Assembly (NCBI RefSeq): GCF_902713615.1
Contig: NC_052166.1
Location: 64,814,406 to 64,878,405, forward strand
Direction of reading: 5' to 3'
From: Scyliorhinus canicula
Lineage: Eukaryota
DNA: 64,000 nt
Shown: positions 27,019 through 57,600 of the stretch, piece by piece
Position numbering within the stretch: position 1 is the first letter of the stretch
Layout of the letters: each line of letters opens with the position of its first letter
Position numbers and translations under genes: made by a program
The notes under the pieces: model-generated
What the model was told of the DNA's origin: nothing
Databases searched by the model: none
The model's input: only the letters and a program-made list of their open reading frames with translations

Positions 27019-27038
27019 TTTGGAGAATATGGCATTTT

Positions 27039-27079
<41 letters not shown>

Positions 27080-27356: not shown

Positions 27357-27402
27357 GGTGTCGGCAGGTGTCTTTGAGCCTGTTGTTATCGAGAGCCGTT
27401 GA
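27357..27402 (+). CDS. FAM102A: FAM102A/EEIG1 last coding exon
   Basis: ccacag|G GTG...CGT TGA; VSAGVFEPVVIESR*, similar to the human C-terminus VSSGVYEPVVIESH as recalled. Confidence 0.95.
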
Positions 27403-32602: not shown

Positions 32603-33069
32603 AAATGAGTGGTGCCTGTAGCTAATTGTACCGGTTATATGAAGAGCACAGTGTGCTCATTCTATAATGCGTGAATCGATCAAAGCTGCATTAGTTAGAT
32701 ATCCCTGTTTGGACTGGGAATGGATGGGAAGGTCAAACAATATAAACTTTAAATGATATTTAAACCAAATCAAACCTAAAGCCTGTAACCCCTTTGCTCC
32801 TTTAATTTTTGTAAGATCTCTCCCTGTTCCCACTTCCATGATTGGCAGCTATAATGAGCCTGCTCAGTATACATTTCCATCGCACAACAGACCGGTGCGA
32901 TTACTCGCTGTCTGATGGGAAGTCCTGAATTTGCAGAATTCCTTGCTTGTATCCTTTAAATACAACTAAAATCAGCCATGGAATCGGACACAAAGACAAC
33001 ACATTCCAAAAATCTATTATGATTGTCATCTGTTTCAAACTAATCCATACAACTGGAGTAACTGAATGT

Positions 33070-34215
33070 TGTCTGTGTGTGTCTCTGTGTGGCGCTGTGT
33101 GTGTGTGGCGCTGTGTGTGTGTGGCGCTGTGTGTGTGTGGCGCTGTGTGTGTGTGGCGCTGTGTGTGTGTGGCGCTGTGTGTGGGGGGGGCGCTGTGTGT
33201 GTGGGGGGGGCGCTGTGTGTGTGGGGGGGGGGCGCTGTGTGTGTGGGGGGGGCGCTGTGTGTGTGGGGGGGGGCGCTGTGTGTGTGGGGGGGGCGCTGTG
33301 TGTGTGGGGGGGGGCGCTGTGTGTGTGGGGGGGGCGCTGTGTGTGTGGGGGGGGCGCTGTGTGTGTGGGGGGGGCGCTGTGTGTGTGGGGGGGGCGCTGT
33401 GTGTGTGGGGGGGCGCTGTGTGTGTGGGGGGGGGCGCTGTGTGTGTGGGGGGGGGCGCTGTGTGTGTGGGGGGGGCGCTGTGTGTGTGGGGGGGGCGCTG
33501 TGTGTGTGGGGGGGGCGCTGTGTGTGGGGGGGGGGCGCTGTGTGTGTGTGGGGGGGGGCGCTGTGTGTGTGTGGGGGGGGGCGCTGTGTGTGTGTGGGGG
33601 GGGGCGCTGTGTGTGTGTGGGGGGGGGCGCTGTGTGTGTGGGGGGGGCGCTGTGTGTGTGGGGGGGGGCGCTGTGTGTGTGGGGGGGGCGCTGTGTGTGT
33701 GGGGGGGGCGCTGTGTGTGTGGGAGGGGCGCTGTGTGTGTGGGGGGGGCGCTGTGTGTGGGGGGGGGCGCTGTGTGTGTGGGGGGGGCGCTGTGTGCGTG
33801 GGGGGGGCGCTGTTGTGCCTGCCTGTGTGGGTGTGTGTGTGTGTGGCGCGCTGGGGTGTGGCGCGCGGTGTGTGGGGGGGGGTGGGGGGGGGGTGTGGCG
33901 CGCTGTGTGGGGGGGTGTGGGGGGGGGTGTGGCGCGCTGTGTGTGGGGGGGGTGTGGCGCGCTGTGTGTGGGGGGGTGTGGCGCGCTGTGTGTGGGGGGG
34001 TGTGGCGCGCTGTGGGGGGGGTGTGGCGAGCTGTGTGTGGGGGGGGTGTGGCGCGCTGTGTGGGGGGGGGTGTGGCGCGCTGTGTGTGGGGGGGGTGTGG
34101 AGCTGTGTGGGTGTGGCGCTGTCTGCGAGCGTGTGTGGGTGTGGCGCTGTCTGCGAGCGTGTGTGGGTGTGGCGCTGTCTGCGAGCGTGTGTGGGTGTGG
34201 CGCTGTCCGTGTGAG
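33070..34215 (+). repeat. GGCGCT(GT)n(G)n minisatellite
   Basis: Units of ~16-28 bp; + strand almost free of A. Confidence 0.95.
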
Positions 34216-35411
34216 CGTGTGTCTCCCCTCTGGGTGTCCTGGTTTAACTGAAGCAGATATTTTTGTGTTGAGATTCTGGATCTTCACTAGAATGGAAAAA
34301 ATTGAAGTAACCTTAAATGGGAGGAGAGGAGGGGTTGGGGGGAAATCATTCAAAAAGAGCTGAGTTAAACCCCGTCAGACAGCCCATTTCCTGTGGAAAA
34401 GCATATTGCTAAAGCCATGTCAGTGACGGTGCTGGACACTCGACTTTGACAAGCAGGAAATGAGGAAAATTGAAATTCGCCGTGCGTTCCATAAAGTACT
34501 TGCTGCAGATCATGGCCCATTGACAAGAGTAACATAGGTTCACACAGGGGTGAACTCTACAGCACCTTGTTTATCCCAGCACCTTGTTACCAATGAGATG
34601 CTTTTATTACTAAATATCGAATTGCCTCTTGGATGAATTATTGTTGCATTTCCCTTTTGAAATATTTTTTGAGATTTCCCTACTTTTTTTATATGGGAGC
34701 TTATAGGAACCTTGTAGATTCTCTCAATGTTCCAACTAACGAGCAGCATCGCCTCATCTGGATTGATTTTGATGGTATTTGATGTTGACTCTTTAGTATT
34801 TTTCCTTAATCAGCAGCTTGTTAAATGCCAGCAGCATAAACCCACATAGGACCTCTGAAGGTGGCAACGTACCTGTTAACCTGACCAGGTAGCACATTCA
34901 TTACAACAATTACTAATGATCTTAGTCAACTCCTTTAACCAACTGTATTCGGGCAAATGACGTGTGGCTCCCTGGCACTCTATTTGCCTTAAGTAAATCT
35001 GTATATTTCTGAAAGGGATTTGAAGCTATGCATTGGGAGATTAGGCACTCCTTTTAATGGATTCTACATTTTATGAAGTGACCAAACTCTGAACTAAAGC
35101 TAAATGATGACGAGAGATTTTTATGATTTTGTTAAAAGTAAAGGTGTTACAGAATGTATTCCGAATGATATATTTAGACACTTATTTTTGTGATCCTACG
35201 GAGGTGGGTGTACAGGTTTCTTAAAAATAAATGCCCAGAGGATGTGGAATTTATAGAAATGTTTATCAGCTGGAATATTGTATAACATTTAGATATGTTT
35301 AGAATGCACAATGTACTGTAATTGGTAAAAAGATATTTGTATTAAGGTTATTTGTTTCATATTTTCAAGTGTAACTATAGGAGCAGTATCATGTAATACT
35401 GTTTTCTGGGA

Positions 35412-35446
35412 AATAAATGATATTGGGTACCTCTATTAACAATAAA
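35412..35446 (+). terminator. Candidate distal poly(A) signals of FAM102A
   Basis: AATAAA at 35412 and 35441 ending an AT-rich UTR-like stretch and followed by a T/GT-rich tract; repeat density jumps right after. Confidence 0.5.
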
Positions 35447-35577
35447 ACAGTTATTTTGTGTTTAGTGTGAAGAGTCTTATTTCAAACAAACTTTAGATTT
35501 TTCTGTTTTTCACCTCCCTCAGGAGATGAATGGTTTTGAGGATCGTTTCCCATTCAATATTGTTTAGACTTTTACTC

Positions 35578-36590: not shown

Positions 36591-36855
36591 TATAATCTTT
36601 ATTGTCACAAGTAGGCTTACATTAACACCGCAATGAAGTTACTGTGAAAAGTCCCTAGTCGCTACATTCTGACACCTGTTCGGGTACACAGAGGGAGAAT
36701 TCAGAATGTCCAAATTACCTAATAGCACGTCTTTCGGGACTTGTGGGAGGAAACCCATGGCGCCACAGGGAGAATGTGCAGACTCCGCACAGACAGTGAC
36801 CCAAGCCGGGAATCGAACCTGGGACCTTGGAGCTGTGAAGCCACTGTACTGCCCC
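36590..36855 (-). mobile_element. V-SINE type C
   Basis: As 25645. Confidence 0.8.
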
Positions 36856-37375
36856 ATAGTATATGTGTAAAAGCAAATTACTGCGGATGCTGGAATCTGA
36901 AACAAAATACCGGACAGCAGGCCTGACTGCATTTGTGGAGAGAGAGAAGAGAGCTGACGTATTGAGTCTGGATAACTTTGTGAAAGTAAGTGTCGCCTTG
37001 AGCAGCTTATCTACCCCCCTGCTGTTTATTGTGCATACCCTTGTAGTGATCTCTATGTTAAGACAGGATTAGTTAATGTGCAGTCAGATGATCACTGGAT
37101 GGCTTTCCTGCTCTTAGTGTGTGTGGAATTGCAGCTAGATGTTAGACGTGACCAGCTCAGAGTGTAGTATTATTAATTGTTAATTTTAATCTAATGTTAG
37201 TTAATTCTATTACTAGTCAAAAGTATGAAAGTAAAAGAACTCGAGTATATTATTTTGTTACTCAGATAATTTGTCATCAACTGGAAGACTTTGACTGCTT
37301 ATCATCAAGTTAAATAAAACCTGGCAAGGCAAATGAGTAATATTCTATCTCTGCAATATAACAACCCTTACATTT

Positions 37376-40558: not shown

Positions 40559-41070
40559 GGTGTTCAGAATAGGGCAGGCTTAGATAAGGTCGACAAAGAA
40601 AAAACACTTCACATTAGCCGGCGGCAAAAGTGTGGAATTTTCTGCAGGGGGAAATGGAGAGGAATGGCTTTCTTTTGAACACGGACCTGGACCTGTCTGC
40701 TCACGAGACTTGCAGAAGAAAAACGATCAATGATTTCAACGGTTGTGGGCATTGGTCGCCGGAGAGGTGTGGACTAACTGGATTGCTATGCAGGGGAGCT
40801 GGCAAAGCCTCGATGGGCCAAATGGCGGCCTCCTGTGCTGCCAAGTACTATGTCTGAATTTCCTGTTCTTTTCCTTTCATTCAATCCATGGAGAACTGTC
40901 TTTGGTTCATATTTTGAGGACAGAAATTGAAAAGCAGATTTGGAAAATATCCCCACCTCAGAATAAAACTTGGACACAAACTGTGTTTTGTAGACAAATG
41001 TCCCTCAATACAGTGTGGGAAAAATGAAATCTGACCATTTTACAGCAAATCCACACTGTAGAACTGCAGT

Positions 41071-41207
41071 TCATTTGTATTGCAGATACTTCCTCTGCTT
41101 TCTTCTTTTCCTTTCTGCACAGGCGTAGCACATACTACACCATATATTTTCCTTGGGAATGATTTCAATGCCGTTGGGCGTCCTGACTGGATCGAGTGCG
41201 CATAAAC
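41071..41207 (-). CDS. MRH-domain protein coding exon 3: cytoplasmic tail and stop
   Basis: ttttctcag|GT; phase 1; GLCALDPVRTPNGIEIIPKENIWCSMCYACAERKRRKQRKYLQYK*; GxExIPxxxxW echoes CD-MPR GMEQFPHLAFW. Confidence 0.85.
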
Positions 41208-41459
41208 CTGAGAAAATAATCAGAGGGTTTTCAGATTCCACACTCCAATGTTCACATTAACAAACACTTGCTCAATGAGGGAGGGCTTCAGATTCCGTTT
41301 GCAACTTCTTAAGAAACAAAAAATGTCAAAAGCAAAATACTGCGGGTGCTGGAAATTGCAAACCGTGGCAGTGCACAGGGATGCTGGTGGGGGTGTACCA
41401 ACGACCCTGTTCACCAGGATTTAATCTTAAATAGACCAACTGGGTTCACATTCTCCTTG

Positions 41460-41941
41460 TAATAATCTTTATTGTCACAAGCAGGCTTAGATTAACACTG
41501 AAATGAAGTTACCGTGAAAAGCCCCCTAGTCGCCACATTCCGGCGCCTGTTTGGGTACGCAGAGGGAGAATTCAGAATGTCCAATTCACCTAACAAGCAT
41601 ATCTTTCGGGACTTGTGGGAGGGAACAGGAGCACCAGGAGGGAACCCACGCAGGCTAGAACATAGAACAGACAGTGTAGAAGGAGGCCATTCGGCCCATC
41701 AAGTCTGCACCGACCCACTTAAGCCCTCACTTCCACCCTATCGCCGTAACCCAATAACCCCTCCTGACCTTTTTGATCACTAAGGGCAATTTATCAATAG
41801 CCAATCCACCTAACCTGCACGTCTTTGGACTGTGGGTGGAAACTGCAGCACCCAGAGGAACCCCATGCAGACTCCGCACAGATAGTGACCCAATGGGACC
41901 CTGGTGCTGTGAAGCAACAGTGCTAGCCACTGTGCCACCGT
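41460..41941 (-). mobile_element. Type C and type A V-SINEs joined or nested
   Basis: Type C tail and body followed directly by a type A tail, body and head. Confidence 0.75.
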
Positions 41942-42594
41942 GAGAGTCACTGACCAGAGTTCTTAACCAATGAAGTGCTTCTGAAGTGTAGTCACTGCTA
42001 CAATATAGAAAAGGCTGCAGTCAATTTCAGCGTAGCCGGGTCCCACAAACAGCAATGTGACATAGACATGGAGAAATACAGCACAGAGCAGGCCCTTCGG
42101 CCCACGATGTTGTGCCGAACTTTTGTCCTAGGTTAATGACGAATGACCAGCTCATTGGTTTGTGATTTTAAGGGAGGAATGTTGGCCCTGATGTTGAGAA
42201 TTCACTGACTCTGATGTGGAGAGAGATACTGATTTGCATTTATCCTGTGTCTTTCAGAAGCACGGGAGGTATTTTACAGCCACTGAAATACTGTCCCTGT
42301 TGTCCTGTGGGAAATGCGACAAGAGATTTCTGCACAGAAAGATCTCCTGCAATAATGAACAGATAATCTGTTTTGGTTTAAGTGTTGTCTGAGGAAGGCC
42401 TTGTGACGAAGCGGATATCATCTCTGCTGCCTCTGGGTCTGAAGCCCAACAGATTGATTATCAATCCTGTAAATCCTTCCAAAGTGCCTAATGACAGGCG
42501 ATAAGAGTGGGAGAATTCCTTGGTTAGCTATACTACAGAAGGCAACAGCAAACGTCTTCAGTACCCGGCCAAGCAACATAAATCAAAAATAGAA

Positions 42595-43135
42595 GTCAAA
42601 GAAAAGTGCAGCACAGGATCAGGCCCTTCGGCCCTCCAAGCCTGTGCCGACCATGCTGCCCGTCTAACCTAAAACCTGCCACACTTCCAGGGTCCGTATC
42701 CCTCTATTCCCAACCTATTCAGGTATTTGTCAAGACACCCCTGATGCGTCACTATCGTGCCTGCTTCCACCACCTCCTCTGGCAGCGAGTTCCAGACACC
42801 CACTACCCTCTGTGTGAAAAACTTTCCACACACATCTCTAAACTTTGCCCCTCCCACTTTAAATCAATGTCCTCTCGTAATTGACTCTTCCACCCTGGGA
42901 AAAAACTTCTGACTATCCACTCTGTCCATGCCCCTTATAATCTTGTAGACTTCTATCAGGTCATCCCTCAACCTCCATCGTCCAGTGAGAACAAACCGAG
43001 TTTATCCAGCCTCTCCTCATAGCTTATGCCTCCCATACCAGGCAACATCCTGGTAAACCTCTTCTGCACCCTCTCTAAAGCCTCCACATCCTTCTGGTAG
43101 TGTGGCGACCAGAATTGAACACTATACTCCAAGTG
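42595..43135 (-). mobile_element. CR1-type LINE 3' fragment
   Basis: ORF 42669-42857 GKFFTQRVVGVWNSLPEEVVEAGT, the canonical CR1 ORF2 end. Confidence 0.85.
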
Positions 43136-43261
43136 CATGTTACCTGATAAAGGGATGTTTGAAGGACACGAATTGGCTAGGGCACCGAGTTAACTCCCCT
43201 GCATTTCTTCAAAAAGTGGCATGGGATCTTTATACACCCAGCTGAGGGAGTATCTTCAATC

Positions 43262-44118
43262 TATAGAATACCTAAGGTGCAGAAGGAGGCCATTTGGCCC
43301 ATCGTGTTTGCATAGGCCCTCCTAAAGAGCACCCTACCTAGGTCTATTCCCAACCTAACCTGCCCATCTTTGGACACGAAGGGCAATTGTGAAATCTGTG
43401 GAACTCTTTGCCGCAGAAGGCCGTGGAGGCCAAATCTCTGAGTGTCTTTAAGACAGAGATAGATCGTTTTTTGATCAATAAGGGAATCAAGGGTTATGGG
43501 GAGAAGGCACGAGAATGGGGATGAGAAAAATATCAGCCATGATTGAATGGTGGAGCAGACTCAATGGGCCGAGTGGCCTAATTCTGCTCCTATGTCTTAT
43601 GGTCCAATTTGGAATTGCCAATCCACCTAACCTGCACATTTTAATGATGGCAGCACAGTAGCATAGTGGTTAGCACAGTTGCTTCACAGCTCCAGGGTCC
43701 CAGGTTCGATTCCCAGCTTGGTCACTGTCTGTGTGGAGTTTGCACTTTCTCCCTGTGTCTGCGTGGGTTTCCTCCGGGTGCTCCGGTTTCCTCCCACAGT
43801 CCAAAGATGTGCAGGTTAGGTGGATTGGCCATGATAAATTGCCCTTAGTGTCCAAAGAAAGGTTAAATGGGGGTTACTGGGTCACGGGAGTAGGGTAGAG
43901 ATGTGGGCCTGAGTAGGGTGCTCTTTCCGAGGGCCGGTGCAGACTCGATGGGCCGAATAGCCTCCTTCTGCACTGTAAATTCTATGATTCTATGAATGAC
44001 TGTGGGCGGAAACTCACGCAGACACAGGGAGAATGTGCAAACTCCACACAGATACAAGGTCAGAATTGAACCCAGGTCCCGGGCACTGAGAGGCAGCAGT
44101 GCTAACCACTGTGCCACC
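43262..44118. mobile_element. Nested cluster: minus V-SINE interrupted by a plus CR1 tail (43390-43605) and a plus V-SINE (43648-43995)
   Basis: SINE pieces resume after each insertion. Confidence 0.75.
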
Positions 44119-44756
44119 TGTACCTCTGTCAAATCCCTCAACTGAAAGATATCATCACTTGCCAGTGTGGCACTCGCTCAGCACTGCATGGAAATGATAG
44201 TCTGGGTTATGTGTGCAAGTCTCTGGAGCAAAGGTTTGCAACTCAGACCCTGAGGCAAAGGCAGATCGATCATCCGAGTTAACACTTCATTGTTGCACCT
44301 TTCCGAAGAAAAGATGTATTGGACTCAATCTTAACTCCATTTCTCTTCCCAGACTTGCTGAGTTTTTCCAACTTCCAGCATCCGCAGTATTTTGCATTTA
44401 CCTTTTTCACATTTCCCTTCCTTTCCTGCATTAATTTTTGGAACATTTCATTTAGAATTCTCACCCTGGCACCCAAATCCCATCAGGGCCTTGCCCCTCC
44501 CTATCTCTCCAACTCCCTCCAGCCCCAGAAACCCCACCAAACTGTCCATTCATCTAACTCTGGTCTCTTGACAATCCCCCGGCCCTTCCTTCTCCTTTGT
44601 TCTGGGCAGCCCCTCAGGATTGAGGATGACTTGCTTCCACTCTGGCTCAATGGCTGATAAGCCAAATGGGTGATCTGCAGACTCTGCCACATGCTGGACG
44701 GGTTGGGTAGGAGGGTTGTTTGCGCACCCCACAATGTCTCAACTTCGCCTTAATTT

Positions 44757-45050
44757 AATAATAATCTTTATTGCCACAAGTAGGCTTACATTAACACTCC
44801 ACGTGAAAAGCCCCTAGTCGCCACATTCCGGCGCCTGTTTGGGTACACAGAGGGAGAATTCAGAATGTCCAATTCACCTAACAAGCACGTCTTTCGGGAA
44901 TTGTGGGATGAAACCGGAGCACCCGGAGGAAACCCACGCAGACACAGGGAGAACGTGCAGACTCCGCACAGACAGTGACCCAAGCCGGGAATCGAACCTG
45001 GGACCCTGAAGCTGTGAGGCAACAGTGCTACCCACTGTGCTACTGTGCTG
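44757..45050 (-). mobile_element. V-SINE type C
   Basis: As 25645. Confidence 0.85.
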
Positions 45051-45476
45051 AACCTCAGACCTTCCTCTCGAGTTGTCCAGTGCCTCCCCGAATGAGCCTT
45101 CTCCATTTTGGTCAGTCTCAAGCCAGGATCTCCCTCGACTCAGCAGGGATGTTTAATCCCTTTGGGGATATGGTGATTTGAGGGCGCCCCTAAAGTGTTT
45201 CTGTTTTCCTCCCGAAAGCCCCCTACCGCTACCGGGTTCCAATTAGAGCTGCTGCTTTGGAAGTCTGGTGTCAGACAAACGAACCTCACATTCCACCGAG
45301 GGGAGCTGGTTTTGAGTGACTAGCGCCTCAATGCTGGGCAAGTTGTCTTCCTTCACCCCACCATCGGCGGCCGTACCTTCAGCCAGCTGGGCCCCATTCT
45401 CTGCAAACCCCTCCCTGAGCCTCTCCTTCTTCTCACTGCAAGAACATCCTTAGAACCCATTTTGACCAACCTTCTG

Positions 45477-45867
45477 TGATGTGTTAGGCAGGTTGGTTGG
45501 ATGCGGACTGCACTCGATGCAGGGAAGCTAGAAACTGACGTCTAACACTGGAGAAGATCCAACACTGTTTTATTCAACGATAGAACTGCTGTACATATTC
45601 AGCTGTGGGTCGACACTATACTGAACTGACTGGAGACCTAGTACTAGCCTGACCAGACTTACTACCGCATGGTGTTTGCACTTGCTGGCTCGTGGACTCT
45701 GACTGTCTCAGTGGCTGGGTCCCGAGGGAGCGGGAAACCCTCTGGCTTTATAGTGGTCGTGTCCTGTCTGGTGATTGGCTGCACTGTGTTGTGTGCTGAC
45801 TGGTCATCCTGTGTGTCAATCACTGCCTGTCTACACCTCATTATATACATGAGTGGATATTATGACT
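45477..45867 (-). mobile_element. Solo LTR
   Basis: 5-bp TSD TTCTG (45472-76 / 45868-72); minus strand starts (A)GTCATAATAT like the 47790 LTR; CCAAT, CTATAAA and AATAAA (45574-45569) in order. Confidence 0.75.
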
Positions 45868-45978
45868 TTCTGGACACCCCCCCGGCTGATGTGTCCATCA
45901 GCATTCATGGCTTTGACAGTCTCTATGGACGTGCCAAGGAACTCTGAGCTCTGCAAGTTCAAGTGTTGTTTCACCCAC

Positions 45979-46194
45979 CGATCAGAAAGTAGGCTGTGGC
46001 GGTCACGCTGAACACTATTGAGATGATGGTTCCTGGACCCACATCCTGGGGTTTGCAGCCACTGGGACAGGCACACGGGCTGTCAACGGATATCTGGAAC
46101 AGGCTGGGATTTGCTGCATCGCGGGAGACGACCACCGAGTAACTGGAGCTGCAGTTAAAACGAACGGCGGTGCGTAGTGGGCTGCTGGGTGAAG
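45979..46194 (-). CDS. MRH-domain protein coding exon 2: end of MRH domain + transmembrane helix
   Basis: Long pyrimidine tract + ttgcag|; 216 nt phase 1-1; ASPSSPLRTAVRFNCSSSYSVVVSRDAANPSLFQISVDSPCACPSGCKPQDVGPGTIISIVFSVTATAYFLI; donor G|GTGGGT. This frame is not in the ORF track. Confidence 0.88.
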
Positions 46195-46297
46195 CTGCAA
46201 CATAGCAGAGAGAGAAAAGGATGAAAATGTATACGGCCGGGGAGGGAGCGACAATGACAGCTTGTGTTTAGACAGTCCTGCATTTAACACTGAATCC

Positions 46298-46480
46298 CTG
46301 GTTTAGCTCACTGGGCTAAATCGCTGGCTTTGAAAGCAGACCAAGGCAGGCCAGCAGCACGGTTCGATTCCCATACCAGCCTCCCCGGACAGGCGCCGGA
46401 ATGTGGCGACGAGGGGCTTTTCACAGTAACTTCATTGAAGCCTACTCGTGACAATAAGCGATTTTCATTCATTTCATTTC
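46298..46480 (+). mobile_element. tRNA-SINE type D
   Basis: As 9045. Confidence 0.8.
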
Positions 46481-46556
46481 ACTGGGTTAATAGGGTAGGT
46501 GACAGAAAACGGCGCCAACTGTATTATCGAATAGCCTGATAAGCAGGAGATTGACG

Positions 46557-47445
46557 TTTTTAAAAATAAATTTAGTGTACCCAATTCATTTTTCCCAATT
46601 AAGGGGCAATTTAGAACATGGAACATGCAGTGCAGAAGGAGGCCATTCAGCCCATTGAGTCTGCACTGACCCACCCAAGCCCTCACTTCCACCCTATCCC
46701 CATAAACCAACAACCCCATCTAACCTTTTTGGACACTAAGGGCAATTTATCATGGCCAATCCACCGAACCCGCACATCTTCAGCCCGGTAGCACAGTGGT
46801 TAGCACAATTGCTTCATAGCTCCAGGGTCCCAGGTTCGATTCCCGGTTTGGGTCACTGATTGTGCGGAGTCTGCACGTTCTCCCCGTGTGTGCGTGGGTT
46901 TCCTCCGGGTGCTCCGGTTTCCTCCCACAGTCCAAAGATGTGCAGGTTGGGTGGATTGGCCATGCTAAGTTACCCTTAGTTCCAAAATTTCCCTTAGTGT
47001 TGGGTGGGGTTACTGGGTTGTGGGGATAGGGTGGAAGTGTGGACTTTGGGTAGGGTGCTCTTTGTAAGAGCCGGTGCAGACTCGATGGGCCGAATGGCCT
47101 CCTTCTGCACTGTAACTTCTATGAAATCTTTGGACTGTGGGAGGAAACTGGAGCACCCGGAGGAAACCCACGCAGACACGGGGAGGACGTGCAGACTCCG
47201 CACAGACAGTGACCCGAGCCGGGAATCGAACCTGGGACCCTGGAGCTGTGAAATCACAGTGCTAATCACTTGTGCTGCCGTGGATTTAGCGTGGCCAATC
47301 CACCTAACCTGCACACCTTTGGGTTGTGAGGGTGAAACCCACGCAGACATGGAGAGAATGTACAAACTCCACACAAAATCCCACAGCCGGGATTGAATCT
47401 GGGACCTCGGTGCCGTGAGGCAGCAGTGCTAACCACTGTGCTGTC
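46557..47445. mobile_element. Triple-nested V-SINE cluster (plus type A inside minus type A inside minus type B)
   Basis: Outer elements resume after each insertion; ATCTT repeated around the innermost copy. Confidence 0.8.
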
Positions 47446-47653
47446 ATCGAACTTTAAAACATGAACACTACCTGCAGACCTGAACATTTTCTTTGCTGCC
47501 CAATTGAGGGAGTGCGGTGCTACTGACGCTGGGAGGCAGCAGGAGATGTTCAGTAAGTGTCGCGCCTACTTGGTTTGTTGCCTGTGACTATGATGTGTTT
47601 GAAAGTTTTCAACCAGGCCCCAGAATTAACAGGCAAAGTACCCGTTAAACCTG

Positions 47654-47700
<47 letters not shown>

Positions 47701-47789
47701 CCAGAGTGGCTGCATTTATCCTTGACCCTCAATCCTCCCCCTCTCCCCTCCTAACCCAGAGTGACTGCATTCACCCTTGACCACCACCC

Positions 47790-48165
47790 TGTCATAATAT
47801 ACACCAGTATATCATGGTGCAGTGATGGACACACACAGGGACCAATCAACATGCACAAACACCGCAGCCAATCACTAGTTAGAATACACACACTATAAAG
47901 GCAGAGGGCACCACGGTTCCCGCTCATTCTGGGTGCTGCCTCTCAGTGTAACAGGAACTTATTCAGCCCAGCACAGACTCACACCACGTGCTGAGAGAAT
48001 CAACTGGTTCGGACAAGGCTTAGGTCTCTAGTCTAAGTTAGCATCACTTAGACCCACAGTCGTCGTGTGTTAGTTAGTTAGAAGTAGTTTATAAAATTGA
48101 GTTGAATCTTCATCAGTGTTGGAAGTGTCTGTTCATCTCTCAAGTCTACACTCGCCAACACTTCA
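47790..48165 (+). mobile_element. Solo LTR
   Basis: TGTCATAATAT...TTCA flanked by 5-bp TSD CACCC (47785-89 / 48166-70); two CCAAT boxes then CTATAAAG. Confidence 0.8.
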
Positions 48166-48840
48166 CACCCCTCCCCTGCCCCCTCTGCACCCAGATTAGT
48201 TATGTCCACACTTGCCCTTCCAAACTGGCTGCAGGATTCAGGGCTCCACGGCCATCAGTTCCGACAATCAGCAGGGACCGTGTAAGAGTCCTTCCTGTGT
48301 ATTTCCTTTGTTCCCATTTGTTTTATTTTATTGTTTTGATCCGTGGGCCCATACTCAGGATGTGCCTGTCAGCAGAGGACTCAATCTGAAACAGCCGGAT
48401 TTTCAGGACAACGTGTTCCCAGGTTTTGCAGTTTGGAGCGGAGAAGCCAGACTCTTCGGCAGAGAGTGGATATTAGGAACCAGCTTTGGAGGGACTCAGT
48501 TCGATTAGTTAACTGGCAACACATGGATTTGCCAGGGGCAGTGTTCTGCCTGACAACAGTCAGCGATTGGATCCTGCAACACGCTTTCTGAGAGGGCTGG
48601 GCAGAAGTGTTTTGACCTTGGAAGTGAAAGGGACTCTCTCTTTCTCTCCTGCTTGCTTTCTTGTCCTGAAGCCAGCGAGTGCCTGGCACATCCTTTATTG
48701 AAACAGATATGATACTGAGTCTACAGAGAAAGTAGACAACCTTTCCAGAGAAAACCATCTCAAGCCTAGACGTACCAAATGAAAGGCTGAATTTCAGAAA
48801 GACATTAACTGGAAGTCATCAGAGCACATTGGGGGAGGGG

Positions 48841-49425
48841 GGGGCAGCACGGTAGCACAGTGGTTAGCACAGATGATTCACAGCCCCAGGGTCCCAGGTT
48901 CGATTCCCGGCTTGGGTCACCGTCGTGCGGAGTCTGTACGTTCTCCCCTTCTCTGAGTGGGTTTCCTCCGGGTGCTCCGGTTTCCCCCCACAGTCCAAAG
49001 ATGAGCAGGTTAGGTGAATTGGCCATGCTAAGTTGCCCCTTAGTGAGGGCAGCACGGTGGCGCAGTGGTTAGCACTGTTGCCTCACGGCGCCGAGGTCCC
49101 AGGCTCGATCCTGGCTCTGAGTCATTGTCCGTGTGGAGCTTGCACATTCCCCCCCTTGTTTGCGTGGGCTTCGCCCCAACAACCCAAAAGATGGGCTGGG
49201 TAGGTGGATTGGCCACGCTAAATTGCCCCTTAATTGGAAAAAATTAATTGGATACTTTAAATTTATTTAAAAAAAAAAAAAAATTGCCCTGAGTGTCCAA
49301 AAAGGTTCAGTGGGGTTACTGGGTTACGGGGATGAGGTGGGCTTAAGTGGGGTACTCTTTCCAAGGGCCGGTGCGGACTCGAAGGGCTGAATGGCCTCCT
49401 TCTGCACTGTAAATTCTATGATTTT
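48841..49425 (+). mobile_element. Type A V-SINE with a type B V-SINE inserted (~49046-49280)
   Basis: AA(G/A)TTGCCCT(T/G)AGTG duplicated around the inner copy. Confidence 0.8.
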
Positions 49426-49570
49426 GTGATCAAACACCTTTATCTATTTTATTAATATTTTCTTTTCCTCTCAACCACCCCTTCCCCTCTGTGTTAATTG
49501 TCTGTGGAGGCAGTTAGAAAGGGGAGGAGGGGGTTGGGAAAGGGGTATTAGATAGTCAGTTACATTTTAT

Positions 49571-49814
49571 TTTATTTTTTTATTTTTTATTTTTTTTATA
49601 TATAAATTTAGAGTACCCAATTAATTTTTTCCAATTAAGGGGAAATTTTAGCGTGGACAATCCACCCACCCTGCACATCTTTGGGTTGTGGGGGTGAAAC
49701 CCACGCAGACACGGGGAGAATGTGCAAACACCACACGGGCAGTGACCCAGAGCTGGGATCGAACCTGGGACCTCGGCGCCGTGAGACTGCAGTGCTAACC
49801 CACTGCGCCGTCCT
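49571..49814 (-). mobile_element. V-SINE type B
   Basis: 16-bp TSD GTCAGTTACATTTTAT (49555-70 / 49815-30). Confidence 0.9.
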
Positions 49815-51291
49815 GTCAGTTACATTTTATGTCAATTTAATTATAATACAGTACATAATAAAAGGTTAGTTGTGTTTTAAAGTCACAAACCTGGTGACTG
49901 TAGTTAATTGGGTTTAGCAAAGGACCTCGGATATTTAAATAAAATCTAATTTCACCCTTGTTGCGAGTCCGGGGGGCTGGAATTGACCACACAGTAGCCC
50001 AGGGGATCGTGACAACAGATGAAGCCTTTCAAACTGTTCCAATTTGATCACAATATATTTTTCAAATTTGCAAAACAGAACTTTATTAAAAAATACTTAT
50101 TTTGTGGTTGTGACGGTCAGTGGGAAGGCCAGAGAGTGTCCAAAATTGCCCCTCGTGTTGGGTGGGGTTACTGGATTATGGGGATAGGGTGGAGGTGTGG
50201 GCTTGGGTAGGGTGCTCTTTCCAAGAGCCGGTGCAGACTTGATGGGCCGAATGGCCTCCTTCTGCACTGTAAATTCTATGATAATCCCGGGTTGCCCTGA
50301 GAAGACGGGTCTTCCGTCTTCCTGACGTGGGGGAGAGGGTGGTAATGCCACTGGACTAGTAATCCAGAGGCTCCGGCTATTGCCCTGACGGAATGGGTTC
50401 AAATCCCAACACGGAAGATGGTGGAATTTAAAGTCAATGAATAAATTTGGGGCAGCACGGTGGCGCAGTGTTTAGCACTGCTGCCTCACGGCGCCGAGGT
50501 CCCAGGTTCGATCCCAGCTCTGGGTCACTGTCCGTGTCTGCGTGGGTTTTGCCCCCACAACCCAAAGACGTTCAGAGTTCATTTAATTTGATTGGAATGT
50601 CTGTCCATCAAATTTTGATATGGTGTGATTGATTTCCCCCCCCCAAGCCTTATCAGTTGCCATGAAAACTGGAGCAGGAACGTTGCCCAGATTTTCATTC
50701 TAACAAAATGTGTCCTTGCTTCTGTCTGGCCTGTTCTAATCTGATCATTGCCAAGCTGTTCAGCAGTTCTCATTGTCATGTTTAAAATGTGTGACTTTAA
50801 TACACCATTTTACTTCTAAACCATTTTTTCCTTTAAACCTAGGTTTCTACCAGGGAGTCCAGAGATTAATCCTCATTCTTCTATCTTCCTTGTCGTACTT
50901 TAGAGATAATATTCTGGGCACTAGTTCCTGGCACTTTTCTCTCTGATTCCTCCGAATCATTTCTCTCTTGCCACATCTTTACTCATTGACTTGCTTCTTA
51001 GCGTTGACCCTCAGATTAAATCACCAGCAGTCAGCTCTCCCCTTTCAAAGGGGAAATTAGCCTATGGTCATCTGGGACTATGGTGACTTTACCTTCCCCA
51101 TAATAAATCTTCCTTTCTCAACGTCCAAGTGTCTTCAGTTCCCCCAATTCACCATGTAGCTCTTTAAAAGGTGACTCGAACATGGTCATTTAGGAAGAAG
51201 AGACCATTCAGCCCCTCCAGCTTTTCACCTCTCCAAGCCCTTTCATCTCCGACCAGCAACTTAAAAGTTTCAAACAAAGAAGAGCTCTTAC

Positions 51292-51712
51292 CAGGGTAGA
51301 TGACGGTGAGTGTTTGCGAGTTGTTGTCATAGCTGAACTCGTTGTCCTCATGCATTCCGAAGTTGAGAAAATCCACAACCTCGCCACCCTGGGTCTGGTG
51401 TCTGATAACAAGACAGACTGCCACGTTCAAACACTCAGAGGCAAACTCGACAGGCTCACTGAATGGGAGACAAGGACTAAATGAATACAGGATATCAGGA
51501 TCGGATTCCCTGCCTGAAGCGATTACTGGTTTATCCCTCTCCAGAAACCCATCAGCGCCCCCCATTGCTGCCAGGTTAATCACCCCCGATCCATCCTCCA
51601 TTATGCATTTGCAGGGGTTCAGTTTAATGCACTCGGTTTTCTGAGAGGCAGAGGCAGGAGGCCATAATATCATCAACAGGCACATCCAGCTGTGAGTCCC
51701 AACATTCGGCAT
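51292..51712 (-). CDS. MRH-domain (CD-MPR/Atg27-like) type I membrane protein, coding exon 1: signal peptide + most of MRH domain
   Basis: ATG with purine at -3; hydrophobic leader WMCLLMILWPPASA; C-x5-C-x-C...DGSGVINL...YSFSPC...C...VAVC...FG...LTVIYP pattern; donor CCTG|GTAAGA; 421 nt, phase 1. Confidence 0.88.
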
Positions 51713-51813
51713 CTCGGAGAGGAATTCCTCACACTGACTCGGTGCTGAAGTACCATCAGGGTGAGAGGTGTACTTGAAGGTTGCAAATGAGGAGTAACTG
51801 TTTGCAGGTTTCT

Positions 51814-51877
51814 ATTGGTACTCGGGTCCCAGCAGCTAAGTTGGGGAAGGGGGGCACAGGCTCCCTTGTTTGATTGG
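51814..51877 (-). promoter_or_regulatory. Two CCAAT boxes upstream of the MRH-gene ATG (candidate proximal promoter)
   Basis: ATTGG on + at 51814-51818 and 51873-51877, about 100 and 160 bp upstream of the ATG. Confidence 0.35.
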
Positions 51878-52009
51878 TACAGATCCTGTTACTGTCCCTT
51901 CTCTCTCTTGTGCGATAACTCCTGGTTGGGTAATGCGTCCGTTTTCAATGTTCTCATCCTCATTTTCAAATCCCTCCCTGTCTCTTAAACCATTTCCCCC
52001 TGGTTGTGA

Positions 52010-52282
52010 GGGTTTCTAGAACCAGGAGTCACAGGGGCAAGTCATTCAGGACTGAGATGAGGAGGGATCTCTTCATTCAGAGGGTGCTGAATCTTTGGAA
52101 TTCTCTACCCCAGAGGCTGTGGAAGCTCAATCATTGATTATGTTCAATACAGAGATCATTACATTTCTACATTTTAAAAATGACAAGTGACACGCAGGAA
52201 AATAGTGTTGAAGTTAAAGATCAGCTTGAATGGTGGAGCAGACTCGAAGGGCCGAATGACCTACTCCTGCTCCTATCTTTTA
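52010..52282 (+). mobile_element. CR1-type LINE 3' fragment
   Basis: gagatgaggagg...ggaattctctaccccagaggctgtgga...gggccgaatgacctactcctgctcctat. Confidence 0.7.
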
Positions 52283-52364
52283 AGTTCTTACAATCTTCAG
52301 AGATCTCTGATTTCCTCCAATTCTGGCCTCTTAGCATCTCTGATTTTAATCACTCCATCATTGG

Positions 52365-54292
52365 TGGCTGAGGCTGGGTTGAGCTGGACTGGGCTGGGAT
52401 GAGCTGGGTTAGGCTGGGTTGAGTTGAGCTGGGCTGGACTAGATAGGATTCGGCTGAGGTGAGCTGGGTTCTGTTCAACTGGGTTGGACTGGGCTGGGCT
52501 GAATTGAACTGGGCGAGTTTGAGCTCGGCTGGATTGAGTTGGAATGTGCTGGGTTAGCTGGGCTGGGTTGAGCTGAGGTTGTGCTGGGCTGGGTTGGGCT
52601 AGGCTGAGCTGGACTGTGTTGGGCTGGGCTGAGCTGGGCTGGGTTGAGTTGGGTTGGGTTGTGTTGGCTGGGTTGAGCTGGGCTGGGCTGATCTGAGCTG
52701 AGCTGGGTTGGGCAGGCTGGGTTGAGCTGCGCTGGGTTGAGCTGGGCTGTGTTGGGCTAGGCTGAGCTGGGCTAGGCTGAGCTGGGCTGGGTTGAGTTGG
52801 GCTGGGTTGAGCTGGAATGTGCTGGGTTAGCTGGGCTGGGCTGATCTGTGCTGAGCTGGGTTGGGCTGGGTTGAATTTTTTACAATAAACTAAGAGTACC
52901 CAATTATTTTTCCATTTAAGGGGCAATTTAGCTTGACCAATCCACCTACTCTGCTCATTGTTTGGGTTGTGGGGTGAGGCACACGAAGACACGGGGAGAA
53001 TGTGCAAACTCCGCATGGACAGTGACCCAGGGCTGCGATCAAACCCGGGTTCTCAGTGCTGTGAGGCAGCAGTGCTAATCACTGTCCACCGTGCTGCCCA
53101 GGCTGGGCTTAGTTGAACTGGGGTGCATTTGGCTGCTTGAGCAGGGCTGAGTTGAGCTGTGCTGAGCTGAGTTGAGATGGGCAGGGTTTAGCTGGAATGG
53201 GCTGGGTTCAGCTTGGTTGGGTTGAGCTGGGCTAGGCTGGGTTGGGTTAGGTTGAGCTGGGCTGAGCTGAGCTGGGCTAGGCTAGGTTGGGTTGAGCTGG
53301 GCTAGGCTGGCTTGGGTTGGGTTAGGTTAGGTTGATCTTGGCTGAGTTGGGTTGGGTTGAGCTGGGCTAGGCTGGCTTGGGTTGGGTTAGATTGAGCTGG
53401 GCTGAGCTGGGCTGGGTTGGGTTGGGTTAGGTTGAGTTGGGCTGGGCTGAGCTGGGCTAGGCTGGGTTCAGCTTGGTTAGGTTGAGCTGGGCTAGGCTGA
53501 GTTGGGTTAGATTGAGCTGGGCTGAGCTGGGCTTGGCTGGGCTGGGTTAGGTTGAGCTGGGCTGGGCTGAGCTGGGCTAGGCTGGGTTCAGCTTGGTTAG
53601 GTTGAGCTGGACTAGGCTGGGTTAGGTTGAGCTGGGCTGGGCTGAGCTGGGCTAGGCTGGGTTCAGCTTGGTTAGGTTGAGCTGGGCTAGGCTGGGTTGG
53701 GTTAGATTGAGCTGGGCTGGGCTGAGCTGGGCTAGGCTGGGTTGGGTTGAGCTGGGCTAGGCTGGGTTAGGTTGGGTTGGGTTAGGTTGAGCTGGGCTGG
53801 GCTGGGTTAGGTTGGGTTGGGTTAGGTTGAGCTGAGCTGGGCTAGGCTGGGTTGGGTTGAGCTGGGCTAGGCTGGGTTGGGTTAGGTTGAGCTGGGCTGA
53901 GCTGGGCTTGGCTGGGCTAGGCTGGGTTAGGTTGGGTTGGGTTAGGTTGAGCTGAGCTGGGCTAGGCTGGGTTGGGTTGAGCTGGGCTAGGCTGGGTTGG
54001 GTTAGGTTGAGCTGGGCTGAGCTGGGCTTGGCTGGGCTAGGCTGGGTTAGGTTGAGCTGGGCTGGGCTGAGCTGGGCTAGGCTGGGTTCAGCTTGGTTAG
54101 GTTGAGCTGGGCTAGGTTGGGTTAGGTTGAGCTCGGCTGGGCTAGGCTAGGCTGGGTTGGGTTAAGTTGAGCTGGGCTAGGCTGGGTTGGGTTAGGTTGA
54201 GCTGGGCTGGGCTGGGCTAGGCTGGGTTGGGTTAGGTTGAGCTGGGCTAGGCTGGGTTGGGTTAGGTTGAGCTGGGCTGAGCTGGGCTGGGT
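52365..54292 (+). repeat. G-rich pentamer tandem array (GAGCT/GGGCT/GGGTT/AGGCT/AGGTT), interrupted by a SINE
   Basis: Continuous 5-bp periodicity visible directly; more degenerate on the left, more homogeneous on the right. Confidence 0.95.
52875..53099 (-). mobile_element. V-SINE type B inserted in the pentamer array
   Basis: Same modules; pentamers continue on both sides. Confidence 0.85.
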
Positions 54293-54657
54293 AGTTGCCG
54301 CCTCCCATAGCCAGGTGGCGCTGTGGCGCGGTAAGTTGTAGCGCACGCGCAAGGTCAGAAGGGGCGGGGCGCGATGACTGACAGCGAGACGGACCAATAG
54401 GAGAATAGGAAAACTAACCCACTGCGGAAATCAAACAGAAACCCCGGCAACCAGAGAGGGAAACCCCGGAGCGGCCGGGAGGCGGGAGCACCGTTAGGGG
54501 AGGGGGTGGCAGCCGGGGGGAGCCAGTGGGCGGGGCAGCGGGGACGGGAGGGCGGGGCAGCGGGGACGGGACCGGAAACGGAAGCGCCTATAGGACAGCC
54601 CTCTGACCTTCACGCGTAACCCCGGAAGTGGTAGACGGGAAGCTCCACAGACTGGAA
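54293..54657 (+). promoter_or_regulatory. CpG-island housekeeping promoter and 5'UTR
   Basis: CpG-dense; NRF1-like GCGCACGCGC 54341-54350; GC boxes GGGCGGGGC (54362, ~54528, ~54550); CCAAT 54394; ETS/GABP sites ACCGGAAACGGAAG 54571 and CCGGAAGT 54622. Confidence 0.85.
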
Positions 54658-54660
54658 ATG
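54658..54660 (+). CDS. DPM2: ATG-only first coding exon, probably DPM2 (dolichol-phosphate mannosyltransferase subunit 2)
   Basis: GAAATG|GTAAGA right after the CpG promoter; human DPM2 lies directly downstream of FAM102A on the same strand and its first intron follows c.3. Identity rests on synteny only, as no further exons are in the window. Confidence 0.65.
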
Positions 54661-54674
54661 GTAAGAAATACAAA

Positions 54675-57600
54675 GAGAGAGAGAGAGAGAGAGTGACCAC
54701 TGACCACTGTGAGGGTCAGTACTGAGAGAGAGAGAGAGAGAGAGAGAGTGACCACTGTGTGGGTCAGTACTGAGAGAGTGACCACTGTGAGGGTCAGTAC
54801 TGAGAGAGTGACCACTGTGAGGGTCAGTACTGGGAGAGTGACCACTGTGAGGGTCAGTACTGAGAGAGTGACCACTGTGAGGGTCAGTACTGAGAGAGAG
54901 TGACCACTGTGAGGGTCAGTACTGAGAGAGAGAGTGACCACTGTGAGGGCCAGTACTGAGAGAGAGTGACCACTGTGAGGGTCAGTACTGAGAGAGAGTG
55001 GCCACTGTGAGGGTCAGTACTGAGAGAGAGTGGCCACTGTGAGGATCAGTACTGAGAGAGAGAGTGACCACTGAGGGTCAGTACTGAGAGAGAGAGAGAG
55101 AGAGAGAGAGTGACCACTGTGAGGGTCAGCACTGAGAGAGAGAGAGTGACCACTGTGAGGGTCAGTACTGAGAGAGAGTGACCACTGAGGGTCAGTACTG
55201 GGTGAGATAGAGTTAGTGCTGTGAGGGTCAGTACTGGGGGAGAGAGAGTGACCACTGTGTGGGTCAGTACTGGGAGAGAGAGTGACCACTGTGAGGGTCA
55301 GTACTGAGAGAGAGTGACCACTGTGTGGGTCAGTACTGAGAGAGTGACCACTGTGAGGGTCAGCACTGAGAGAGAGTGACCACTGTGTGGGTCAGTACTG
55401 GGAGAGAGAGTGATCACTGTGTGGGTCAGTACTGGGAGAGAGAGTGACCACTGAGGGTCAGTACTGAGAGAGAGTGACCACTGTGAGGGTCAGTACTGAG
55501 AGAGAGAGTGACCACTGAGGGTCAGTACTGAGAGAGAGAGTGACCACTGTGTGGGTCAGTACTGAGAGAGAGTGACCACTGTGAGGGTCAGTACTGAGAG
55601 AGAGTGACCACTGTGAGGGTCAGTACTGAGAGAGAGTGGCCACTGTGAGGGTCAGTACTGGGAGAGAGAGTGACCACTGTGGGTCAGTACTGGGAGAGAG
55701 AGTGACCACTGAGGGTCAGTACTGAGAGAGTGACCACTGTGAGGGTCAGTACTGAGAGAGTGACCACTGTGTGGGTCAGTACTGGGAGAGAGAGTGATCA
55801 CTGTGAGGGTCATTACTGAGAGAGAGTGACCACTGTGAGGGTCAGTACTGAGAGAGAGAGAGTGACCACTGTGTGGGTCAGTACTGGGAGAGTGACCACT
55901 GTGTGGGTCAGTACTGAGCGAGAGAGTGACCACTGAGGGTCAGTACTGAGAGAGAGTGACCACTGTGAGGGTCAGCACTGAGAGAGAGTGACCACTGTGA
56001 GGGTCAGTACTGAGAGAGAATGACCACAGTGAGGGTCAGTACTGAGAGAGAGAGAGAGAGAGAGAGTGACCACTGTGTGGGTCAGTACTGAGAGAGTGAC
56101 CACTGAGGGTCAGTACTGGGAGAGAGAGTGACCACTGTGTGGGTCAGTACTGGGAGAGAGAGTGACCACTGAGGGTCAGTACTGAGAGAGTGACCACTGT
56201 GAGGGTCAGTACTGAGAGAGAGTGACCACTGTGTGGGTCAGTACTGGGAGAGAGAGTGATCACTGTGAGGGTCAGTACTGAGAGAGAGTGACCACTGTGA
56301 GGGTCAGTACTGAGAGAGAGAGAGTGACCACTGTGTGGGTCAGTACTGGGAGAGAGTGACCACTGTGTGGGTCAGTACTGAGCGAGAGAGTGACCACTGA
56401 GGGTCAGTACTGAGAGAGAGTGACCACTGTGAGTGTCAGCACTGAGAGAGAGAGTGACCACAGTGAGGGTCAGTACTGAGAGAGAGAGAATGACCACAGT
56501 GAGGGTCAGTACTGAGAGAGAGAGAGTGACCACTGTGTGGGTCAGTACTGGGAGAGAGTGACCACTGTGTGGGTCAGTACTGAGAGAGAGTGTGACCACT
56601 GTGGGTCAGTACTGAGAGAGTGACCACTGAGGGTCAGTACTGAGAGAGAGAGAGAGAGAGAGTGACCACAGTGAGGGTCAGTACTGAGAGAGAGAGTGAC
56701 CACTGTGTGGGTCAGTACTGAGAGAGAGAGTGACCACTGTGAGGGTCAGCACTGAGAGAGAGAGACCACTGTATGGGTCAGTACTGAGAGAGTGACCACT
56801 GTGAGGGTCAGTACTGAGAGAGAGAGTGACCACTGTGAGGGTCAGTACTGGGAGAGAGAGTGACCACAGTGAGGGTCAGTACTGGGAGAGAGAGTGACCA
56901 CTGTGAGGGTCAGTACTAAGAGAGAGTGACCACTGTGTGGGTCAGTACTGGGAGAGAGAGTGACCACTGTGTGGGTCAGTACTGGGAGATAGAGTGACCA
57001 CTGAGGGTCAGTACTGAGAGAGAGAGTGACCACTGTGTGGGTCAGTACTGAGAGAGTGACCACTGTGAGGGTCAGTACTGAGAGAGAGAGTGACCACTGT
57101 GAGGGTCAGTACTGGGAGAGAGAGTGACCACTGTGAGGGTCAGTACTGGGAGAGAGAGTGACCACTGTGAGGGTCAGTACTAAGAGAGAGTGACCACTGT
57201 GTGGGTCAGTATTGAGAGAGAGTGACCACTGTGTGGGTCAGTACTGGGAGAGAGAGTGACCACTGTGTGGGTCAGTACTGGGAGATAGAGTGACCACTGT
57301 GAGGGTCAGTACTGAGAGAGAGAGTGACCACTGTGAGGGTCAGCACTGAGAGAGAGTGACCACTGTGAGGGTCAGTACTGGGAGAGAGTGACCACTGTGA
57401 GGGTCAGTACTGAGAGAGAGAGAGTGACCACTGAGGGTCAGTACTGAGAGAGAGAGTGACCACTGTGAGGGTCAGTACTAAGAGAGAGTGACCACTGTGT
57501 GGGTCAGTACTGGGAGAGAGAGTGACCACTGTGTGGGTCAGCACTGCGAGAGAGAGAGTGACCACTGAGAGGGTCAGCACTGAGAGAGAGTGACCACTGT

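Follow-up and report, generated by a model that had tools for sequence, protein, structure and literature searches.

LOC119955395, an uncharacterised catshark gene beside DPM2, encodes a predicted single-MRH membrane protein lacking the canonical sugar-binding residues

Is the three-exon open reading frame (ORF) that lies between FAM102A and DPM2 in the catshark Scyliorhinus canicula a real gene, and what kind of protein would it encode? We address this in a stretch of 64,000 nucleotides (the window; assembly GCF_902713615.1, contig NC_052166.1, forward-strand positions 64,814,406 to 64,878,405), where three minus-strand exons splice into a stop-free ORF of 774 nt encoding 257 residues. The gene is LOC119955395; with its orthologues we call it the LOC119955395 family. 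Vertebrate lysosomal sorting is taught as a two-receptor system, made up of CD-MPR (M6PR, also MPR46) and CI-MPR (IGF2R). Our analyses show that LOC119955395 is real, intact, conserved, and under purifying selection, and they point to a type-I membrane protein with an MRH fold whose sugar-binding signature is essentially lost. The reading we favor, by analogy with known receptors and at a probability of roughly 55%, is that the protein is a receptor or escort cycling between the trans-Golgi network and endosomes, with its MRH domain repurposed for a ligand other than mannose 6-phosphate, probably a protein.

An intact and conserved gene

Splicing and translating the window reproduced the three exons, the GT-AG introns, the phase-1 junctions, and the 257-residue ORF set out in the initial annotation, as well as the layout it gave for the protein: signal peptide, cysteine-rich luminal domain, SPCACP, transmembrane segment, and a tail with GIEIIPKENIW. 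Coding exon 1 (51292..51712, minus strand, 421 nt) runs from the start codon at 51712-51710 to a GT donor at 51291-51290, and supplies residues 1-140 plus the first base of codon 141; it encodes the signal peptide and the majority of the MRH domain. Coding exon 2 (45979..46194, minus strand), which has 216 nt or 72 codons and is phase 1 at both ends, encodes the final MRH strands, the SPCACP motif, and the bulk of the transmembrane helix (about 46039-45979). Coding exon 3 (41071..41207, minus strand, 137 nt) completes the transmembrane segment, encodes the cytosolic tail (about 41199-41074) with its GIEIIPKENIW motif and CxxCxxC cysteines, and ends in the stop codon TGA at 41073-41071. The donors read CCTG/GTAAGA (exon 1) and ATCG/GTGGGT (exon 2), and each acceptor, TTGCAG/ or TCTCAG/, is preceded by a polypyrimidine tract (the slash marks the exon boundary). 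In the ORF listing exon 1 appears as a 182-residue read-through ORF, and exons 2 and 3 lie in ORFs of 54 and 56 residues; exon 1 alone passes the threshold of at least 60 residues and, as had been noted, is the only exon visible in that track.

Comparison with the great white shark, Carcharodon carcharias, clearly shows that this structure is conserved. The exons of its orthologue are also 421, 216, and 137 nt long, and they reproduce its protein (P0002) exactly. Nei-Gojobori estimates of the ratio of nonsynonymous to synonymous substitution rates (dN/dS) for this pair of sharks are 0.19 for the whole coding sequence, 0.15 for its luminal part, and 0.16 for its tail, values that indicate purifying selection, in line with the earlier claim of an intact gene. 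In a blastn comparison of the loci, exon 2 is 82% identical in nucleotide sequence. Conservation continues on both sides of the coding region. A block 3' of the stop codon (40771..41070, minus strand) is a probable 3' untranslated region (UTR), lying in an alignment of window 41362-40771 to positions 17598-18169 of the great white shark locus (L001) at 78.6% over 602 columns. The 5' flank (51713..52368, minus strand), a putative 5' UTR and promoter, lies in an alignment of window 52368-51095 to L001:9303-10651 at 76% over 1365 columns. A pseudogene or a chance ORF was also considered, and was rejected on the dN/dS of 0.19 and the conserved exon lengths.

Public annotation already holds the gene. 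The initial annotation described it as hidden, which does not hold: RefSeq lists the locus as uncharacterized in S. canicula, along with counterparts in dozens of other species. The gene is therefore annotated publicly but unnamed, uncharacterised rather than hidden. RefSeq isoform X3 of S. canicula LOC119955395 (P0004, 185 residues) equals window exon 1 joined to exon 3, letter for letter: exon 1 is 100% identical over 141 residues, and the product of exon 3 is identical to the C-terminal 44 residues. A public gene model thus already uses the donor of exon 1 and the acceptor of exon 3, and an in-frame form that skips exon 2 is annotated. The splice junctions are thus supported by this isoform together with conservation across species. 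Skipping exon 2 (45979-46194) leaves a product of 185 residues that lacks the last MRH strands and most of the transmembrane segment. RNA-labelled runs of the same organism contain sampled words from the exon 1 and exon 2 stretches, which hints at expression. We searched the literature for the LOC identifiers and for a paralogue of CD-MPR, with no relevant result; the lack of a name and of a literature may reflect the fact that the gene was not found in human, mouse, or chicken.

The luminal domain and the sugar-binding signature

The protein is predicted to comprise an N-terminal hydrophobic helix acting as signal peptide, one luminal MRH beta-barrel domain, one transmembrane segment (GPGTIISIVFSVTATAYFLIGLCAL), and a cytosolic tail of 42 residues, the arrangement of a type-I membrane protein. 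Ten cysteines lie in the luminal domain, a cysteine-rich beta domain that ends in SPCACP. Eight of them (C28, C34, C36, C81, C94, C100, C155, and C183) are invariant or nearly so across 107 vertebrate and invertebrate sequences, and C181 and C187 are conserved inside the vertebrate family. The C-x2-VA-x-C and C-A-C-P motifs align with cysteine-bearing segments of the CI-MPR repeats.

Structure prediction agrees with this assignment. A first AlphaFold model, built from 22 sequences, reached a pLDDT of 64; a second (AF2), built from the 107 sequences, reached a pLDDT of 87 and a pTM of 0.75, with most of the luminal domain above 90. When the second model was compared with the PDB by Foldseek, the top 48 matches were all MRH-domain proteins. 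The best was CI-MPR domain 8 (6z31; TM score 0.73 by target, root-mean-square deviation 3.6 A), and the next were CD-MPR, CI-MPR domains 1-3, 5, and 11 (TM score 0.59-0.65 for domain 11), and Elapor1. The top PDB matches of the first, shallower model were likewise all MRH domains. Among reviewed AlphaFold entries, the matches were fungal Atg27 (E 6e-7), yeast Mrl1, CI-MPR, and CD-MPR. The MRH fold that the initial annotation had proposed can be regarded as established at the level of these predicted models. A profile of the vertebrate family only had no match among PDB sequences at E up to 10; the sequence link to the PDB, through CI-MPR repeats, was obtained with a profile of invertebrate relatives instead.

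Sugar binding by MRH domains depends on four residues, which in CD-MPR are Gln66, Arg111, Glu133, and Tyr143 (together, QREY). We located these columns in three independent ways: by aligning the invertebrate profile with CI-MPR domain 3 in HMMER (Q in AVCQV, R in FQRMSV, E and Y in GEV-DCTY), by profile-profile alignment with M6PR sequences, and by a joint MAFFT alignment. M6PR keeps each of the four in 14 of 14 sequences, and the invertebrate relatives keep each position in 40-48 of 74. The LOC119955395 family keeps Q in 0 of 31, R in 1 of 31, E in 0 of 31, and Y in 0 of 31. Gln is replaced by Leu or Val (L101 in catshark) and Tyr by Leu or Phe (F173), while the Arg and Glu positions are variable, corresponding in catshark to L147 and roughly to 168-169, where the alignments differ slightly. 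With the signature essentially lost, canonical binding of mannose or mannose 6-phosphate is very unlikely, and a role in mannose-6-phosphate sorting is, on this sequence evidence, unlikely as well. The description "P-type-lectin-like" therefore fits the predicted fold and not the four canonical residues, which are essentially gone.

It is possible that the protein is still a lectin, with an MRH pocket rebuilt from family-specific residues to bind another glycan, and that it works as a receptor in sorting or quality control that depends on glycans. Constraint is strongest in the luminal domain (dN/dS 0.15), and the family carries many invariant polar residues not found in invertebrate relatives (H121 and the near-invariant R104) along with its DGSG and FSPCLPFSEP blocks. 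Roughly half of the invertebrate relatives, moreover, have retained all four QREY residues, and a lectin ancestor is therefore probable. Nevertheless, the four residues used by every known sugar-binding MRH domain have been replaced, mostly by hydrophobic ones. Nor does CI-MPR domain 8, the best match among solved folds, belong to the M6P-binding domains of CI-MPR, which are 3, 5, 9, and 15. We consider a retained lectin activity unlikely, though deserving of attention.

Family relationships and taxonomic range

A profile search revealed a large family of invertebrate single-MRH proteins of about 250 residues, with members in amphioxus, Lingula, and nemerteans; the nearest ESM Atlas clusters are mostly molluscan. 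The vertebrate family aligns with this invertebrate family over its full length (hhalign probability 100%, E 5e-43), and the invertebrate family aligns in turn with CD-MPR (99.6%, E 4e-25). A direct comparison of the LOC119955395 family with M6PR reaches a probability of only 11%. Each of the 74 invertebrate members matches Pfam Man-6-P_recep as well as ATG27 at E of at most 0.01. Membership of the MRH superfamily rests on the profile-profile links and on the precomputed PF09451 matches that many orthologues carry, the Pfam scores of the catshark protein itself being below threshold. The resemblance to CD-MPR and Atg27 described at the outset agrees with the matches to both Pfam families and to AlphaFold entries.

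Could the gene nonetheless be a fast-evolving shark orthologue of M6PR? It has the same architecture and size and a similar juxtamembrane tail motif, and a tree in which the two families were forced together was not rejected (p-AU 0.76). Marsupials, however, carry M6PR too (P0232 and P0233, 82-83% identical to a human-type query); because they possess both genes, LOC119955395 is not the orthologue of M6PR, and the reading is refuted there. In addition, the family occupies the DPM2-FAM102A locus in every species with readable neighbors. In a maximum-likelihood tree the LOC119955395 family (31 sequences) and M6PR (14 sequences) form separate clades, each with 100% support, and the former tracks the species tree from chimaera to marsupials. 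Together with the low profile probability, these results bear out the view that the protein is too divergent to be the M6PR orthologue, and we find the contrary hardly credible. No shark M6PR was among the best 120 of 533 matches in an M6PR search, all 120 of which were amniote.

The origin of the family is less sharply defined. Its nearest outgroup in the tree is an amphioxus protein (P0051; SH-aLRT 92). The tree with the LOC119955395 family and M6PR forced together had the higher likelihood, and long branches are involved. Set against the amphioxus placement, this result leaves two origins standing: an ohnologue of M6PR or an older lineage. The best explanation, judged by sequence comparison, is that the family descends from a stock of single-MRH receptors common to M6PR and the invertebrate CD-MPR-like and Atg27-like proteins, as a lineage separate from M6PR. 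It is tempting to speculate that LOC119955395 represents a third vertebrate MPR-type cycling receptor that has moved from glycan to protein recognition, maybe as a 2R ohnologue of M6PR, with independent losses in placentals and sauropsids; this fuller account we think rather improbable. Were it true, a specific cargo, such as a hydrolase, a growth factor, or a membrane partner, would travel by this receptor through the trans-Golgi network-endosome system of fishes, amphibians, and marsupials.

Multi-domain relatives were also recovered from amphioxus and from metagenome contigs (P0048 and P0049). These proteins have 697-919 residues and 4-7 tandem repeats of the LOC119955395-type MRH domain, and seem intermediate between receptors with a single domain and repeat proteins of the CI-MPR type.

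Orthologues were sought by word-seeded protein searches and by an exhaustive profile search; two of the resulting lists gave 33 and 17 named orthologues, and others added more. All full-length orthologues are labelled uncharacterized or hypothetical. Among cartilaginous fish they occur in sharks, skates, rays, and chimaera, and among ray-finned fish in bichir, reedfish, paddlefish, gar, bowfin, and many teleosts, including eels, salmonids, cypriniforms, and percomorphs. Frogs, including Xenopus tropicalis, have the gene, as do six marsupials (bilby, wombat, monito del monte, Tasmanian devil, antechinus, and tammar wallaby). The family thus appears from sequence searches to be retained in most jawed-vertebrate lineages. 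No placental, monotreme, bird, or reptile orthologue was present in any list from the two kinds of protein search. The conserved blocks ought to seed matches if such proteins were annotated, and their absence points to loss; the gene has apparently been lost in placentals and sauropsids.

These results revise the proposal that the gene was kept in cartilaginous fish and lost or moved in mammals. The lack of placental and monotreme matches in these searches agrees with it, but six marsupials have the gene, and its presence across ray-finned fishes and frogs contradicts a restriction to cartilaginous fish. Nor has it moved in the one marsupial whose locus was read: the bilby copy lies at the same DPM2-FAM102A position.

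Two structural peculiarities accompany this distribution. In ray-finned fishes (Xyrauchen, L002, and Polyodon, L003) an extra intron near codon 104 splits the region of shark exon 1, giving four coding exons. Marsupial orthologues have the DGSG and DVGPG motifs replaced and sit on a long branch of 0.97 substitutions per site.

Predicted role, locus, and comparison with known receptors

The cytosolic tail offers the clearest suggestion of where the protein might act. Within the family, G225, P230, W235, and C239 are invariant or nearly so, and they lie in a motif, G-(I/V)-(E/Q)-I-x-P-(K/E)-E-x-x-W-C-x-(L/M)-C, that aligns with the invertebrate G-x-E-x-I-P-N-x-x-F-W and with GMEQFPHLAFW of CD-MPR. 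In CD-MPR the di-aromatic pair F18-W19 keeps the receptor out of lysosomes, and nearby cysteines are palmitoylated. By analogy, the LOC119955395 protein may cycle between the trans-Golgi network and endosomes as CD-MPR does; the conserved Trp would direct retrieval from endosomes, and the cysteines would be palmitoylated and serve as anchors. In place of mannose 6-phosphate, its luminal domain would bind another ligand, which is most likely a protein (compare the binding of IGF2 by CI-MPR domain 11) but could be a different glycan. Such a protein would serve as a receptor or escort for cargo, a role that placental mammals and sauropsids seem able to do without.

Several points weigh against this reading. 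The roles of the CD-MPR Trp and Cys residues are carried over to the LOC119955395 tail by analogy. Conservation between vertebrate classes does not extend to the C-terminal half of the tail: the distal part is basic in sharks, ends in -ETL in ray-finned fishes, and ends in -YFKV in several frogs, and the YLQYK with which the catshark tail ends is not conserved even among sharks. Family tails have no counterpart of the invertebrate LPGLIKDG segment and terminal YxxPhi, or of YRGV and the acidic-cluster dileucine (DDHLLPM) of CD-MPR. No shared adaptor signal of the DxxLL or YxxPhi type can be named, and the trafficking route is therefore uncertain. It is also possible that R104, H121, D40, and S42, invariant residues specific to the family, form a new sugar-binding site. 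Finally, the Pfam scores of the protein fall below the cut-offs, both for ATG27 (PF09451; 22.2 bits, E 1.6e-4, cut-off 27) and for Man-6-P_recep (18.1 bits, E 1.5e-3, cut-off 25.4).

An alternative is that the protein is Atg27-like, a membrane component of ATG9-type Golgi-derived vesicles in which the tail matters and the MRH domain serves mainly as structure. The best Pfam match is ATG27, the best reviewed AlphaFold matches are to fungal Atg27, and many orthologues are labelled with PF09451. In yeast, the MRH domain of Atg27 has been reported to be dispensable for bulk autophagy, with the tail binding Atg9 (bioRxiv 10.1101/2025.11.06.685569), and such a dispensable domain would fit a sugar-blind one. 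The luminal domain of the LOC119955395 protein is nevertheless more constrained than a dispensable domain would suggest, and its tail aligns with those of CD-MPR and the invertebrate receptors, not with any segment shown to bind Atg9. ATG9 trafficking, moreover, runs in placental mammals and birds without the gene. The invertebrate relatives fit the two Pfam families equally well, so that the ATG27 label is mostly a sign of common ancestry. We think an Atg27-like role doubtful, and continue to favor a cycling receptor or escort with a repurposed MRH domain.

The surroundings of the gene are conserved as well. Neighbors were read in five species (great white shark, paddlefish, bilby, Rana, and Xyrauchen). 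In great white shark, paddlefish (Polyodon), and bilby the order is DPM2 (divergent), the family gene, and FAM102A (convergent), FAM102A being recognized as an NT-C2 domain gene; in paddlefish, PIP5K follows beyond DPM2. DPM2 adjoins the family gene in Rana, and FAM102A, again as an NT-C2 gene, adjoins it in the sucker Xyrauchen. The family gene thus sits head-to-head with DPM2 and tail-to-tail with FAM102A. The window is colinear by blastn with the great white shark locus across LOC119955395 and the long FAM102A 3' region, and this alignment and the neighbors in other species confirm the placement between FAM102A and DPM2 that had been given for the catshark gene. In human, DPM2 and FAM102A have been treated as neighbors with an intergenic single-nucleotide polymorphism from a genome-wide association study, and the interval, in which the family gene would formerly have been placed, is a glaucoma locus of that kind (PMC6219795); we imply no link with the gene described here.

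The first exon of DPM2 lies at 54620..54662 on the plus strand. It was located by alignment with the Carcharodon locus, whose called DPM2 gene ends there, and consists of a conserved CCGGAAGTGG box followed by an ATG at 54658-54660 and, directly after it, a GT donor. This exon contributes the ATG alone, and the remainder of DPM2 lies beyond a minisatellite, off the window; a search of the window with pieces of the paddlefish DPM2 peptide gave no match. The minisatellite occupies window 54738-64000, with units of 32-34 bp, a 66-bp higher order, and the consensus GAGAGAGAGAGTGACCACTGTGAGGGTCAGTACT; it measures at least 9.3 kb and continues past the window end. As it starts about 80 bp after the DPM2 exon-1 donor, the array fills DPM2 intron 1. 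The syntenic array of the 32-34 bp unit in great white shark is much shorter, at about 630 bp (L001:5610-6241).

Other repeats and conserved blocks were seen in the window. Between the start codons of LOC119955395 and DPM2 lies a pentamer array (52366-54292; GGCTG, GAGCT, and GGGTT, with higher-order periods of 25-120 bp), and a related array holds the same position in great white shark (L001:6651-7035); it is a repeat of conserved position in the promoter interval shared by the two genes. The region 3' of the FAM102A coding sequence (25513-35538), probably the 3' UTR with its flank, matches great white shark at 76-80% identity over about 8 kb in total. It is as strongly conserved as the coding exons of LOC119955395, and a GT-rich simple repeat lies in it at about 32950-34360. 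One short interspersed element, reading in translation ...TVVSTVASQLQGPRFDS.LGSLSVRSLHVLPVSAWVSSGCSGFLPQSKDVQVRWIGHAKLPL..., is dispersed over both strands in more than 15 copies, for example at 734-1003, 5589-5945, 19574-20086, 36639-36932, 43666-43848, 44786-45121, 46994-47396, and 48805-49247; several lie within both LOC119955395 introns.

In the setting of the two-receptor system, LOC119955395 represents a third conserved single-MRH membrane protein, one with the juxtamembrane motif of CD-MPR and without the sugar-binding signature. It was not found in human, mouse, or chicken, the species in which nearly all such cell biology was done. The gene would inform how MRH domains lose lectin activity and gain new ligands.

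Comparison with known systems places the protein among existing receptors. Like CD-MPR, it is a type-I protein in the range of about 260-280 residues with one luminal MRH domain, one transmembrane segment, and a short tail, in which a juxtamembrane G-x-E-x-(I/F)-P-x4-(I/F)-W is followed by cysteines, and the two are related through the invertebrate single-MRH family. Unlike CD-MPR, the family does not keep Gln66, Arg111, Glu133, and Tyr143, has no LPGLxxDG segment, YRGV, or acidic-cluster dileucine end, differs in the N-terminal half of the domain, and occupies another locus. With the invertebrate single-MRH receptors it shares the start C-x5-C-x-C ... DGSG-x-I-x-L, the block (F/Y)-S-x-(N/S)-P-C-x-P-F-(S/T)-E, the C-x2-V-A-x-C motif, the S-x-C-A-C-P end, the transmembrane segment, and the G-x-E-x-I-P-x4-W tail. 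About half of those receptors keep each QREY position, however, and most end in LPGLIKDG...YxxI, and the vertebrate family lost both. Fungal Atg27 is likewise a single-MRH type-I membrane protein and gives the best Pfam and Swiss-Prot AlphaFold matches, but the Pfam score is sub-threshold and the family has no conserved C-terminal tyrosine signal. The closest solved folds are the non-lectin domains of CI-MPR, domain 8 and the IGF2-binding domain 11, in which the QREY pocket is not used; those domains are repeats in a 15-domain receptor, whereas LOC119955395 would be a free-standing receptor of a single domain. As far as its sequence tells, LOC119955395 is a sugar-blind addition to the single-MRH kind of receptor, and not a new kind of system.

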